A stretch of 64,000 nucleotides of DNA, taken from positions 248,001 to 312,000 of the forward strand of contig NW_020844790.1 in the NCBI RefSeq assembly GCF_003704095.1, read 5' to 3'. This DNA comes from Pocillopora damicornis (taxonomy: Eukaryota). Positions within the stretch are counted from its first letter, which is position 1, and each line of letters opens with the position of its first letter. The notes beneath the pieces were generated by a model. The model worked only from the letters and a program-made list of their open reading frames with translations, was not told the DNA's origin and searched no databases. Below are positions 43,848-62,246 of the stretch, in pieces. Position numbers and translations under genes: made by a program.

Positions 43848-45518
43848 TTATTTTCTTTTACTTTCCGGCAAACATACTGAAGGTGGACCATCAATCTGCG
43901 GAAGAAAAGGAGAGAAAAAGAAAGTGAAAGAGCTTTCTAGAAAATGGGCCTGGTCACCAAGTGACAGAGAAAAATGCAAAAATAATTATTTGGAAATACT
44001 CTTGATGCAATATGCCCAGGCTCTTCAGTGTAATTATATCAGGATTTCAAATGTTAAAGTCCTTACAGTTGCGATAAAAAAATAGCCATCAGTATTGTGC
44101 TTTAAGTAGGGGTTTTCTATGTAGGTTTAATACACAATACGTAGAGTGCAATGGGAGAAAGCCGCCTCGCAGTGTTAGTGGTGTAAGGTTAGCTGTGTTC
44201 TTTTGTTCTCGTTTGTAAAGTATGTACATGAAAATAATTGACAAACCATAGAGAATAGACTCCATGATTGGCTTCACCCTTAATCCTTTAACTCCCAGAT
44301 CAAATTCGTTACTCTCTTTACTGTAAATGGTACAATTCTTATAATGTTAGTTCAGAGGATTTAGTATTGGATCAACTTATTATCCCCAAATTGATATTTT
44401 TCTTTATCCTCGTCGCTTATCTGGTTTATGTTGTATTGACTTGTAAGGAGAAATTCTGTCTTGGTCACTAATGGGAGTTTAAGGGTTAGACTCCTTTCAA
44501 CTTCTTACCTAGAAATATAAAGAGTTATTACATAATCATACAGTCATAATACGAAATGTCTTTAAAATGCATCGTCGAAACATGCATTACCTTCACTTTA
44601 AAATTAGGTTGTATGATACAACAGGCCCTTTGTTTCTCCTTGTTTCGGCCTCTGATGGCTTCACAAAAATCTCCTTTAATCTTGGTGTAACCATGCGGAC
44701 ATGCGCCGCTGTAGGGATCTGTAAAGAAACACGCAGCGAAGTCGCCATCGAAGGAATGTTCTGCTTTACTTAAATCGTAACTTTCACATTTTCCTTCCAC
44801 TGAATAGCCTATAAAGAGGATTGGTACAATCACTTTTCATTAAAACAGAGAAATTATTAGTCTTTAAACTCGAGAGAGGTTCGTTCATGGAGTGCTCAAA
44901 GTAATGAAAGTAACCGAATCTCATCTCAGTGTAAATCGCCGTTTACACTCTAAAAGCTGCAACTTAACTCTAAGTGAAAGTCAGAATATAAAAGAAAGAG
45001 GGAGAGAGGCTAAAAAAATGTTTCAATTCGATTATAAAGAAAAGAAAGGGGAATAGGAAATATAGTTAATGAGTGAAGAATAACAAGGAAACGGGCAGAA
45101 AAAAAGAACTGAAAAAAGTACTCATAAATAGCTCGTGGTTATCTCAGAAAATAAGGAAGGATAGTCAGGATATATCAAATTTCCTAAATTGGATAAAATT
45201 GCACTATTTCCTCTCGTTTGCAATATTTTTTCTGACTGGTTTCTTCTTAACGCTTGCAGTTAAGTGTAATCTATGTTCTATCTCTATCGCTCTTCTCCTG
45301 AAATCGAAATTGACATCTCGATCGCGCTCTATTGTTTAAGTGTTTCGTTAGAAAAAACTTCGGCAAGAGATGGTGATGTAGTTTGTATAGTCTTCTTGGT
45401 AAGCATCCATCGAGTCCTAACCATGACAAGAATCAAAATGTCAAAACCTCACAGAAGGAATCTTACCCAAAAGAAAAACAGACAGAGATGATATCCAGGC
45501 AAGCATCAACTTCATCAT
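43848..45518 (-). CDS. Small secreted 7-Cys peptide, paralog F (105 aa)
   Basis: Exons 45467-45518, 44591-44808, 43848-43895: MMKLMLAWISSLSVFLL|GYSVEGKCESYDLSKAEHSFDGDFAACFFTDPYSGACPHGYTKIKGDFCEAIRGRNKEKQRACCIIQPNFKVK|IDGPPSVCLPESKRK*. Confidence 0.88.
44280..44489. mobile_element. piggyBac-type MITE (copy 3), in intron 2 of paralog F
   Basis: ttaa-tcctttaactccc ... gggagtttaaggg-ttag termini. Confidence 0.6.
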
Positions 45519-45722
45519 TTACTTTGGCACATCGACACATGGAAAACTAAGTGAAAAAAAAGTAACGGAAAGAAGTTACAATCACAGTCATAAAAGGCCT
45601 TCATTCCAGACATTTCAGGACATTAACTCAAATTTTATTCTTTCTTGTTGTAATGCGAAGAGAGAATTAATTGGATGATTAATTGGAAAATCAAACATGG
45701 CAATGAATAGTAGAGATTCAAA

Positions 45723-46674
45723 GGCCGCGGCCGCACAACACGAGTTGACCGAGTTCAGTTTCTAATTATTTAATTGGAATTAACTGGGTAACAGAAAAAT
45801 CGTGGTGCGGCCGCTTTTTTCGGCTTTTCATCGAACTGAAGCTGGCTTAACGGTAAACATAGAAATGAATCGAAGAAAAAAAGGTTTATTAACCGAGTTT
45901 GGTTAATTTTAAAACACCTTTCTGCCCAGTTAAACCCAGGTTTGTGGTCTCTTATCAGTGCTGCATTTTGCTCTTTTTTTTTTCGCGAAATGTGCCAGTC
46001 ATCGCGGAGTGTGCGGGAGACGTTATCCTACGTAGCACGAACAGGTGCATAAGTTTATGATCACAGCGTCATGTAACAACAGCCACAACAACAAGTTACA
46101 TTTCTTAAGCGCCACACTCCAATTGCCACACAATTCTCTATCCATTGTAAAATGCTGCTCGGAGGCAAGAGTCATAAAAAGTGAAAGAATACAGTTGAGC
46201 GTTTAAAAAGGACTCGATGTTCATTCAAAAGGTCTCTACAGAAGCCACGCATGGCAGGATTCGCAACTTCCTCAAGCCATCGCTGATTTCTCGGATATAG
46301 CCAAACTGAGGGACAATTCAATCGACGGCGATGGAGAACACTCTGACATCTACACAAAATACACAACATATTCGAAAGAACTGCTTTGGAAGTTTGCGTA
46401 GGACGCATCGGAAGGAAGAGGGATTATAGTGAGTGTAGAGAAACGAAACGAAAAGAAAGAAAGAAGCGAGAAAATATCAATGTGGTCCTCGAAGTCAGCA
46501 TTTTTGTAGTTTCTCGAATGATGTCAAGTTCACCCTCTTCATTGCGGCCGTTCACAAAATATAACCCCAGCGTTTTATCGAAGCCAACCTTTCAGCGAGC
46601 TAAGTTTTTTAGAAATTTTAACCCGGTTTCTAATATAAACCAATTTAGTTAACTTTCTCAGCGCGGCCGCAGCT
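45723..46674 (-). mobile_element. Possible decayed PIF/Harbinger-like DNA transposon
   Basis: Imperfect inverted ends ggccgcggccgcac / gcgcggccgcagct. The internal minus ORF (VWLYPRNQRWLEEV...EHRVLFKRSTVF) resembles the N-terminus of Harbinger transposases. Confidence 0.35.
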
Positions 46675-59780: not shown

Positions 59781-61169
59781 ATGAGGACTCTCGTTATCGC
59801 CACACTGCAACTGTTCATATTGTGGAACATGTCGGGTAAGAGAACTATTTGTCGTTTTGCGCAATGCCTGTCATTGTAGCTACAATTTTATTCATGATTG
59901 ATGTCCACTATAAGCTAAGCTTGTATGAGGTTACCATTCCTGATCAAGTTACTTTCAGACTCTGATACGCTCTGCCACATAGACACATTAATAGGAGTTA
60001 CATAAAGACAGGTTAACATTTTTTGTGAGACAATAATTAAGCCAACAATCAATTTAACCAAGTATCTCTTCGTTCATTCTTTGCGAAATTATATGAAAAA
60101 TTGAACAGTTACTTGAATATGAAAGCGCTCTTAGACATACAGGCCTGATGTTTGAAGTACAGGCCTGAATTTTGAAGTACAGGCCTGAATTTTGACGTAC
60201 AAGCCTGAATTTTTTCAGGCCCTTTTCTCACTACTGCTGAAGTAGTGTTCATAATTGCGAAGATCGCTTTCATATTCACGTCTTTATTCGCAGTTCAAAT
60301 AAACGACTTTCATACATTCACAGTCGTCAATAGTTACTGGCCACTTCCTGGGGCTTGCTTTGCTTTTTTACTGGTTCTCTTAAAAGTTGTATTTGCTTTC
60401 GTGAAAGGGGGAGTGAAAAGGGAAAGCCAAGAATTCATGATTCGTTCAAAGTTTATGGGTAAAAGTAGCCTCTTCCCGTTTTAGCATCATTGTCGCTGCC
60501 AATGTTATTCCCGTCCTTCCCACTGGTAAGGCCACTGTCTTCATACTTTTCCTGATCTTTGTCATTCTCATTGCCGTTGTTAAAGTTTATTCTAATGTTA
60601 TTGTAACAGATAAACTCGTAAATGGATTATGCGGCAATCCTGCAGGAAGCAATGCTATTCACAGTAACTGGGTAGCTTGCCTCAGGGCTGAGAACAATGG
60701 ATGCCCTCACAACTTTCCGGTACTTGAACAGACAGGCCTTTGCCCCAAAGGGGAAGTTTGTTGCTTTCTTCAACCAGAATTTTTCGCAGAGGTAAAGCAT
60801 ACTCAATGAGCTTCGACAACTTAATTTCTTGCAAACTAGTTTCAGTATCCATCAACTTTGAACCACCTCCTGGCCCACTAACAATCTACTAAGACATTTT
60901 TCTGAGATGTCCATTGCGTAAATATAACCACCGTTACACATGCAGCACACAATGATATATGATAAGAGCCAAATGAAAATGTGGAGCATTTTTTACAGAT
61001 CAAAACACACAGCAGTGGCGTATATTTTGCATTGTTTTCTCGTTTTTTCTTTTCTGATTTGTTTGTTTCTGTTTTTTGGCAGGCGGAGCCATATCACTGC
61101 ACATTACGAAAACGCAAGAGAAGCGTATTGGAGAAATACATTTCACATGATCATAGTCATCTTAACTAA
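59781..61169 (+). CDS. Small secreted 7-Cys peptide, paralog G (107 aa)
   Basis: Exons 59781-59835, 60610-60791, 61083-61169: MRTLVIATLQLFILWNMS|DKLVNGLCGNPAGSNAIHSNWVACLRAENNGCPHNFPVLEQTGLCPKGEVCCFLQPEFFAE|AEPYHCTLRKRKRSVLEKYISHDHSHLN*. AATAAA at 61214-61219. Confidence 0.88.
60138..60326 (+). repeat. 20-bp tandem repeat (4 units) leading into a dispersed-repeat fragment, in intron 1 of paralog G
   Basis: tacaggcctgaattttgaag repeated, then caggcctt...cactactgctgaagtagtg...cgcagttcaaat. Confidence 0.6.
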
Positions 61170-61299
61170 CGTTGTGGTGTTGTTAATTATTAATTTTATA
61201 CTCGTTATCTTTCAATAAATTTACATTAATCTTTCTACTTTCCTTATTGATATCGAAATGGTGAAAATCAAACCCCAACTTGACTAAAATTGGGGCTTG

Positions 61300-62246
61300 A
61301 GAAAAATCTGAACGGTAAGTATTCCCAGTGCAGCATCCAAGGGCTGCTTCATCTCTGAATCGCCCTATAACACACTTAACCGAAGCTTAACTTTTCCAAA
61401 GAGGTTTGTGGCGGCATTTGGAGCGTTCCAAGTCAAGTCTTCTACCCCGGACCCCTTGGTGAAGCTGATCATCTATGTGAATAAAATAGTGGGCACAAGC
61501 ACTTCAGGTTCTGGTATCACAGATTCTGGGAAGATTGTACGGAATGAACATCTCTTTCCCATAAAATCCTTCGGTGTATGTTGTGACGTAGTTGCTGTCA
61601 GCTAATGGTAGTTTGTATACGACTTCACCAGTTTCAGTGAATGAGCTGCCAGCCACCGACGTCAGCACAGCGCGGGTTTTTGAATATTCTTTATCACTTC
61701 CCGTTTCATAATATATATAGGAGGGTACTGCTTAAAACTTTGCATCAATGGTACCAAATTTTCTTCATTCGCCAACCAGTTGTAATTGCGTAACCATGAT
61801 CGCCGGGAAAAGAATCCAGTCGACAAACACTCGCCGATTTTCTTGCCCTGGTTGAGGTACTCTGACTAATCGCAATACAAGGCAGCATGTGACTGAAGGC
61901 GGTCTTGTGCCATAAAAAGGCCCAGCATAAGCTGACTTGCGATCAGAAGGTCATTAGAAACAGTTATAGATTGTGCTAGCTTCTTAGCTACTTCAACGAC
62001 GCCCGCCAGAGCATCAGCAAGATCGAATTGAAAATCAAAACTGTTATCTCTAAGAGCTGCAAATTCGGCTAAAGTTCCTTCTAGTTTTTCACACAGAAGC
62101 ATTCCCCTTAGCACACCCTGACTCGCAGAGGCGCCAATACCTAGAGCATTGAACAACAGATCGTAAGACGTGTCCTTAAACGCTGCCCACAAAGCATCAT
62201 TTTGAGTAGGACGAGCCCTCGAAACTTTTGGAGTGTAATCACTCAT
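61300..62246 (-). pseudogene. Truncated, decayed third paralog of the large secreted protein
   Basis: YTPKVS...NDALWAAFKD...LLCEKLEGTLAEFAALRDNSFDFQFDLADALA...LQSHAALYCD* then EYLNQGK, WLRNYNWL, TWNAPNAATNL, RDEAALGCCTGNTYR in shifting frames, with stops and deletions. The N-terminal half is missing. Confidence 0.88.

Follow-up and report, generated by a model that had tools for sequence, protein, structure and literature searches.

Why do genes for short, cysteine-rich peptides and genes for large secreted proteins lie head to head, pair after pair, in the genome of a reef-building coral? The question is raised by a stretch of 64,000 nucleotides from Pocillopora damicornis (contig C1425:248001-312000; hereafter, the window), which we examined together with genome-wide searches of the 234.35 Mb assembly (4,393 contigs) and with the corresponding loci of other corals. 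The initial annotation had proposed a two-component effector locus built from inverted copies of a small-plus-large gene cassette. As set out below, the pair is an ancient, repeatedly co-duplicated, and divergently oriented stony-coral cassette, for which a shared control region and a joint function are, in our modestly confident view, the best explanation.

We call the intact large genes L1, L2, and L3, the large-gene pseudogenes psi1 and psi2, the intact peptide genes A to H, and the decayed peptide gene psi-peptide. Peptide exons in the window were located by tblastn and profile search; coral species X and Y stand for the assemblies ENA ERZ25067556 (a 209 kb contig) and ERZ25071792, respectively. 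Seven peptide main exons lie in the window, those of A-F on the minus strand (~26.2, 29.7, 33.3, 37.0, 40.0, and 44.6 kb) and that of G on the plus strand. The elements of the window are as follows.

44591..44808, minus strand: main exon of peptide gene F with six cysteines; AG acceptor upstream of 44808 and GT donor after 44591; found by tblastn, profile match with an E-value of 7e-26
45467..45518, minus strand: signal-peptide exon of F, MMKLMLAWISSLSVFLL, with its ATG at 45518; phase 1, GTAAGA donor
49335..52262, plus strand: L1, a secreted large protein of 975 amino acids (aa) in an open reading frame (ORF) with no intron in the coding sequence; species X ortholog 66% identical
54312..57050, minus strand: L2, a secreted large protein of 912 aa, ORF likewise with no intron in the coding sequence; species X ortholog 65% identical
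59208..59404, plus strand: exon 1 of peptide gene G, 5' non-coding; in a spliced contig of RNA run X4, 59404 is joined to 59763 across a GT..AG intron
59763..59835, plus strand: exon 2 of G with its ATG at 59781 and the signal peptide MRTLVIATLQLFILWNMS; spliced contig and sequence reading
60610..60791, plus strand: main exon of G with six cysteines; tblastn and spliced contig; species X ortholog 69% identical
61083..61169, plus strand: putative terminal exon of G with the seventh cysteine (AEPYHC...) and a TAA stop; phase 0 after the main exon; 61045-61173 is 72% conserved in species X
61305..62246, minus strand: psi1, a large-family pseudogene with stops, C-terminal part only; a recent L3 copy with 69-84% DNA identity to L3 and psi2
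26186..40212, minus strand: peptide genes A-E in tandem with no large gene interleaved; main exons at 26186-26386, 29654-29854, 33317-33517, 36978-37157, and 39970-40185

F(-)/L1(+), L2(-)/G(+), and L3(-)/H(+), the last beyond the window, are thus pairs on opposite strands that are transcribed away from each other. ORFs, tblastn matches, and sequence reading place every element of the order described by the initial annotation (F and L1, L2 and G, then a minus-strand pseudo-paralog) where it had been put, and the start spacings of ~3.8 and ~2.7 kb correspond to ATG-to-ATG distances of 3,817 bp (F-L1) and 2,731 bp (L2-G). The spliced contig of run X4 joins 59208-59404, 59763-59832, and 60607-60746, which confirms the G model and adds its 5' non-coding exon. 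Runs X1-X3 cover introns and intergenic DNA at equal low depth, which we read as unspliced RNA or genomic carry-over rather than expression. Between 60200 and 60400, in intron 2 of G, the summed contig depth reaches 46-382 in all four runs (against 1-6 nearby) with many loose ends; this peak is probably a high-copy interspersed repeat.

The cluster continues past the end of the window, where the following elements were found.

L001:665-844, plus strand: psi-peptide, decayed and with a stop, downstream of psi1
Beyond the window, minus strand: psi2, the second large pseudogene, an 82.7% match over 2.1 kb; a dead copy of the large gene only
Beyond the window, minus strand: L3, intact, 995 aa, found by whole-genome search
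L002:2665-2859, plus strand: peptide gene H, intact and divergent from L3

The full order is therefore A-F(-), L1(+), L2(-), G(+), psi1(-), psi-peptide(+), psi2(-), L3(-), H(+). That G was the sole inverted peptide gene, as first described, holds inside the window; beyond it, psi-peptide and H also lie on the plus strand, and in both cases a large gene on the minus strand precedes them. In whole-genome profile searches, the nine peptide copies all fell within C1425:274-325 kb (NCBI annotates one of these genes as LOC113669035), and so did the large-family copies, with the exception of one at C1285:60429-62769. The latter (plus strand) is a stop-riddled large-family pseudogene with at least seven stops, and contig C1285 has no peptide-family match.

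The window alone proves little, as a single divergent pair has prior odds of about 1 in 4 and copies inherit their orientation. Head-to-head pairs, both orthologous and paralogous, occur in at least four other coral assemblies.

Species X: E-like peptide gene (minus), F-like peptide gene (minus), L1 ortholog (plus), L2 ortholog (minus), G ortholog (plus), with the identities given above (66, 65, and 69%), and a large-gene fragment (minus)
Species Y: H-like peptide exon (minus) upstream of a 1001-aa large gene (plus), then a second large gene (minus)
Porites lutea: large gene (minus) and peptide gene (plus), then peptide gene (minus) and large gene (plus)
Desmophyllum pertusum: large gene (minus) and peptide gene (plus), 9 kb apart

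A single 42 kb contig of Porites evermanni carries a large protein and two peptides whose accessions are consecutive. Among stony corals, Porites is a member of the "complex" clade, and the remaining named species are "robust" corals; the two clades have been separate for hundreds of millions of years. Trees divide the coral large genes into at least five paralog lineages besides Y_b, namely L1, L2, L3 core, L3b, and Porites b. All five have a peptide gene as their divergent partner, and for Y_b the flanking sequence is too short to judge. In a tree of the short peptides, whose deep branches are unresolved, the groups E/F, G, and H correspond to L1, L2, and L3, respectively, and other corals retain each of the three old cassettes (L1-E/F, L2-G, and L3-H). 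The order of the cassettes, on the other hand, differs: the peptides lie inside in Porites and the large genes inside in Pocillopora and species Y, with each pair intact. Recurrence in at least four coral assemblies and the confinement of both families to one cluster put the pairing far beyond chance adjacency, although this does not itself separate selection from inherited synteny. For the spectrin neighbor of the Porites locus, no counterpart was found in the P. damicornis window.

How did this array arise? The psi1 stretch 61305-62240 has up to 84% DNA identity to L3, and the psi-peptide region, including the last exon, is 75-78% identical to the H region. Since psi1 and psi-peptide both match the L3-H region, the L3-H unit was copied as a block, after which both genes of the copy decayed. 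The only large copy of the cluster that stands without a partner, psi2, is a pseudogene as well. The unit of duplication is thus shown to be the cassette (small plus large gene) rather than the single gene, and its copying gave both the alternating head-to-head array and the mirrored pairs of other corals. Accordingly, the duplication of a small-plus-large cassette in inverted orientation that had been proposed is borne out by the recent L3-H copy, the three old cassette types, and the mirrored Porites pairs, and the suggested birth and death of genes is seen as duplicated and decayed copies in both families. Near-identical pairs of H-type peptide genes also lie close by each other in Stylophora (LOC111325255/56), Oculina (LOC144656310/11), and Desmophyllum (OS493_000736/000739); in the last, the two locus tags in between would fit a mirrored cassette pair.

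Do the two genes of a pair share a promoter? Classical bidirectional promoters have transcription starts less than ~1 kb apart, and the divergent ATGs are about 2.4-4 kb apart. Conservation and splice motifs point to first exons that lie much closer together, as listed here.

46986..47124, minus strand: putative non-coding first exon/promoter block of F; 76% identical over 140 bp to a block upstream of the species X E-like gene; GTAAGA donor
47860..48125, plus strand: putative non-coding first exon/promoter block of L1; 72% identical over 319 bp to species X; ends AAAG|GTAATT
58007..58150, minus strand: putative non-coding first exon of L2; 82% identical over 94 bp to species X; ends CAT|GTAAGA

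A strong polypyrimidine-tract TAG acceptor ends at 49282, just before the L1 ATG, and a strong acceptor region (57231-57261) lies just upstream of the L2 ATG. L1 and L2 thus probably have introns in their 5' untranslated regions, of ~1.1 kb and ~0.8 kb, respectively. By this reading the divergent first exons would be ~0.7-1.1 kb apart (47124 versus 47860; ~58150 versus 59208 or less), with RNA support for exon 1 of G only, and at such distances a shared control region is plausible. Of the shared bidirectional promoters that had been suggested, then, the divergent strands and the short distance between the putative first exons speak in favor, whereas the ATGs, at 2.4 kb or more apart, do not. 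The upstream regions of eight peptide paralogs have no detectable similarity, and no common promoter motif could be defined among them. Likewise, the L3-H intergenic DNA is almost unalignable with that of Porites, Desmophyllum, and species Y, and no RNA family of Rfam matched the region 43000-64000.

What do the two genes encode? The large protein is secreted, 900-1000 aa long, and encoded without introns in the coding sequence. A profile search of 1.84 billion representatives gathered 369 clusters of this family, which has its conserved core in the C-terminal ~600 residues; distant members carry N-terminal olfactomedin, SRCR, HYR, Sushi, EGF, or Xlink domains. No significant Pfam domain was found in the large protein, only a weak ephrin-receptor/TNFR-like match in its cysteine-rich tail, and a sequence-profile search of the PDB returned designed coiled coils only. 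Basic clusters (KRKRR; KR...KR; RKRSRVYRR) are present at ~340-350 and 915-930 in L1, at ~855-866 in L2, and at the equivalent place in L3. They are found in a loop of low model confidence and immediately ahead of the cysteine-rich tail. They resemble proprotein-convertase sites, and the large proteins may therefore be cleaved after secretion. As called, the species X L2 ortholog (L011:4009-4062, 4058-6658) is an 866-aa product that ends without the cysteine-rich tail, and a tail-like GCC..YRPNW follows in another frame, so that a frameshift, a short intron, or truncation of the gene is suggested.

A first AlphaFold2 model, of L1 from nine sequences, was poor (predicted local distance difference test, pLDDT, 52) and was superseded by a model of L2 from a 105-sequence alignment (pLDDT 85.9, predicted template-modeling score 0.85). 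The L2 model consists of helical bundles with very long helices up to ~650, a beta-sandwich at ~655-855, and the cysteine-rich tail. In a Foldseek search of the PDB its top 20 matches were all Tc toxin A subunits, with E-values from 2e-4 (best) to 5e-2 and template-modeling scores of only 0.13-0.18. A second-look alignment placed model residues ~290-855 on TcdA1 ~2000-2516, which we take to be the channel and TcB-binding end, with a Z of ~6 over ~250 residues, which is under the caution line for helical folds. A separate fold search with ~280-620 listed NheA (Z 7.8), MakA (7.0), SmhA (7.0), Cry6Aa (6.5), YaxB (6.4), and AhlB (6.4), although unrelated helical bundles score alike and these values lie below the caution line. 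As modeled, the large protein thus bears a weak resemblance both to the channel end of TcA and to pore formers of the ClyA type; we call it "pore-former-like" and do not file it as a member of either group.

Comparison with these toxins underlines differences as well as common features. TcA proteins (TcdA1, XptA, YenTcA) work with separately encoded partners, but they are ~2500 aa long against 912-995 aa in the coral, and the coral protein has no shell, receptor-binding, or neuraminidase-like domain. Unlike TcA, it does have a eukaryotic signal peptide and a cysteine-rich tail. Pfam models of TcA (VRP1, TcA channel, TcA_TcB_BD, and others) matched none of 50 family members at E-values up to 1, and neither L1 nor L2; a feature-based search gave TcA as a lead at rank 14 only (score 0.79). 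No gene of the TcB/TcC type or large RHS/YD type is among the large ORFs of the window, where the neighbors are cysteine-rich peptide genes, and a literature search for TcA-like proteins in animals found nothing relevant. The ClyA family (NheA, Hbl, MakA, SmhA, AhlB, YaxB, Cry6Aa) weakly resembles the L2 model in its elongated helical bundle and comprises multi-component systems with clustered genes; its partners, however, are paralogs of similar size, whereas the small partner in corals is a cysteine-rich peptide. Bacillus_HBL matched weakly in one of 50 large-family members (E-value 0.0023).

The peptide genes have three or four exons and encode secreted precursors of ~90-110 aa, with six cysteines in the main exon and one more in the short last exon. 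In every paralog the main exon is preceded by a signal-peptide exon of phase 1. Our peptide comparisons use individual exons, and full precursors come from database records only; NCBI models confirm the H-type terminal exon (...SPCLAG...). The seemingly invariant valine that ends the genomic exon translations is a splice-donor GT read through (GTA/GTG); in the NCBI precursors, I/V-K-D-S-P-C from the next exon comes in its place. Evolution is fast in peptides A-F, and H of Pocillopora and Stylophora has eight cysteines against seven elsewhere. All named relatives detected for the peptide come from stony corals; it has no Pfam match, and a sequence-profile search of the PDB matched nothing. A hydrophobin identity, proposed as a protein atlas lead (score 0.90), was rejected because it needs eight cysteines in the pattern C-CC-C-C-CC-C and the peptide has seven, or eight in those two H peptides, with a single CC pair. 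Both families are unnamed, and no paper on either was found in literature searches, including searches by peptide LOC/XP identifiers and by the Lottia and Patella homologs; the peptide gene identifiers were also not found in the Stylophora cell atlas supplements searched.

Small and large secreted partners with adjacent genes and a joint action are known from fungi, in the aegerolysin and MACPF pore formers (pleurotolysin A/B, ostreolysin A6/PlyB). These offer the best functional analogy for a eukaryotic small-plus-large pair. An aegerolysin/MACPF identity is rejected, as Pfam finds neither domain and the coral small partner is a disulfide-rich peptide; in the literature searched, nothing turned up on aegerolysin pairs that have a bidirectional promoter. 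Closer to home, animal venom and immune clusters are likewise made of tandem, fast-evolving genes for signal-peptide-bearing cysteine-rich products with conserved exon structure and gene birth and death. Unlike those clusters, the coral array is interleaved, in a fixed divergent orientation, with a second and unrelated family, and it is kept across coral families.

The conserved pairing suggests that the two products work together. In our preferred reading, each pair would share one control region, which the two putative first exons, about 1 kb apart or less, make probable, and it would be switched on in the same secretory cells. Both products would leave the cell jointly and serve a single extracellular effector function, for example in defense or in attack on prey or competitors. 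The role of membrane-active or target-binding component would fall to the large protein, and the fast-evolving peptides would act as co-effectors or modulators. Direct binding of peptide and large protein is possible. A complex prediction for L2 24-912 with the G main exon, run without alignments and with an uncertain peptide fold, returned an ipSAE (interaction prediction score from aligned errors) of 0.00 in two runs, which is neither support nor counter-evidence.

Several observations weigh against this reading, and many of them would be expected if two unrelated, expanding secreted families had simply come to adjoin once in an early stony coral, with segmental duplication and slow rearrangement doing the rest and no regulation or function in common. 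Coral genomes rearrange slowly, so that retained neighbors need no selection, and orientation is inherited, so that the many pairs trace to few independent events. Each family also duplicates by itself: the five intact peptide genes A-E lack a large neighbor, and psi2 is a large-only duplicate. The large family occurs outside the stony corals (in the anemone Actinostola and the jellyfish Sanderia among cnidarians; in the limpets and abalone Patella, Lottia, and Haliotis among molluscs), and in other phyla it would work without the peptide. Linkage in other genomes, which had been put forward as a check, holds in stony corals, whereas the large-gene loci of Actinostola and of a mollusc-clade assembly have no peptide exon within 10 kb, at distances where detection of a short, fast-evolving peptide is weak. 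A divergent large gene from a Tara coral metagenome similarly has no peptide exon in its ~3.9 kb upstream and ~2.4 kb downstream flanks, again with weak detection. The spacing within pairs varies from 2.4 to ~10 kb among species, and in Orbicella faveolata a peptide and a large gene within 16 kb are convergent, at a locus of which about half is assembly gap. Moreover, the transcription starts are read from conservation and splice motifs rather than mapped, run X4 holds a spliced G contig and no L2 contig (contigs cannot show absence), and the complex prediction, although without a verdict, is counted as a lack of binding support. Passive synteny is harder to reconcile with five large-gene lineages that each retain a divergent peptide partner, with a cassette order that varies between Porites and Pocillopora or species Y while the pairs stay intact, with the decay of both genes in the recent extra copy and the death of the large copy without a partner, and with putative first exons ~1 kb apart or less. 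We consider it a tentative alternative, possible yet on the unlikely side.

A tighter partnership has been considered as well. In a true two-component toxin, the peptide would be a subunit that targets, activates, or stabilizes the pore-former-like large protein and that binds it either without a covalent bond or by way of the odd cysteine of the peptide. The pairing conserved over paralog lineages, the odd cysteine number of the peptide with the seventh on an exon of its own, the peptide groups that parallel the large-gene groups, and the likeness of the large-protein model to channel parts of multi-subunit toxins would all be consistent with this. Against it stand the ipSAE below the mark (by the tool's own statement no counter-evidence), nine peptide genes versus three intact large genes, and a large family that is older than the peptide. 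The mature large proteins also have an even number of cysteines in L1 and L2 and an odd one in L3 and X_L1, and thus no consistent free partner cysteine. Such a toxin is, in our judgment, doubtful. An equally doubtful extension is an undescribed animal two-component pore-forming effector, in which a TcA-channel/ClyA-like protein would need its cognate, co-transcribed peptide and co-duplication would have produced at least five matched pairs. An obligate one-to-one system is in any case disfavored by the partner-less A-E and by a large family that is wider than the peptide. By analogy with toxin-immunity systems, the peptide might instead serve self-protection or maturation: as an inhibitor or chaperone, it would hold the membrane-active large protein inert within the producing cell. 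Tight divergent linkage and the pseudogene state of the one partner-less large copy would fit. However, the anemone and mollusc-clade large loci have no detectable peptide neighbor, peptides A-F change rapidly and are more numerous than the large genes, which is a better fit to effectors, and the missing binding support, again from a prediction without a verdict, counts here too, so that this role appears highly improbable. We thus return to shared control and joint action as our preferred reading of the pair.

In short, the locus provides a testable unit: a divergent gene pair that reef-building corals have conserved and duplicated as one, and of which one member resembles a membrane-active toxin component. 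If the two genes are co-regulated and act jointly, they would constitute a new kind of cnidarian defense or venom module and offer a way to study innate immunity or competition in corals. If they are merely retained in synteny, they would still illustrate cleanly how interleaved effector arrays are built by segmental duplication. Finally, the wider large-protein family, which spans cnidarians and molluscs and carries variable N-terminal recognition domains, merits a description of its own.

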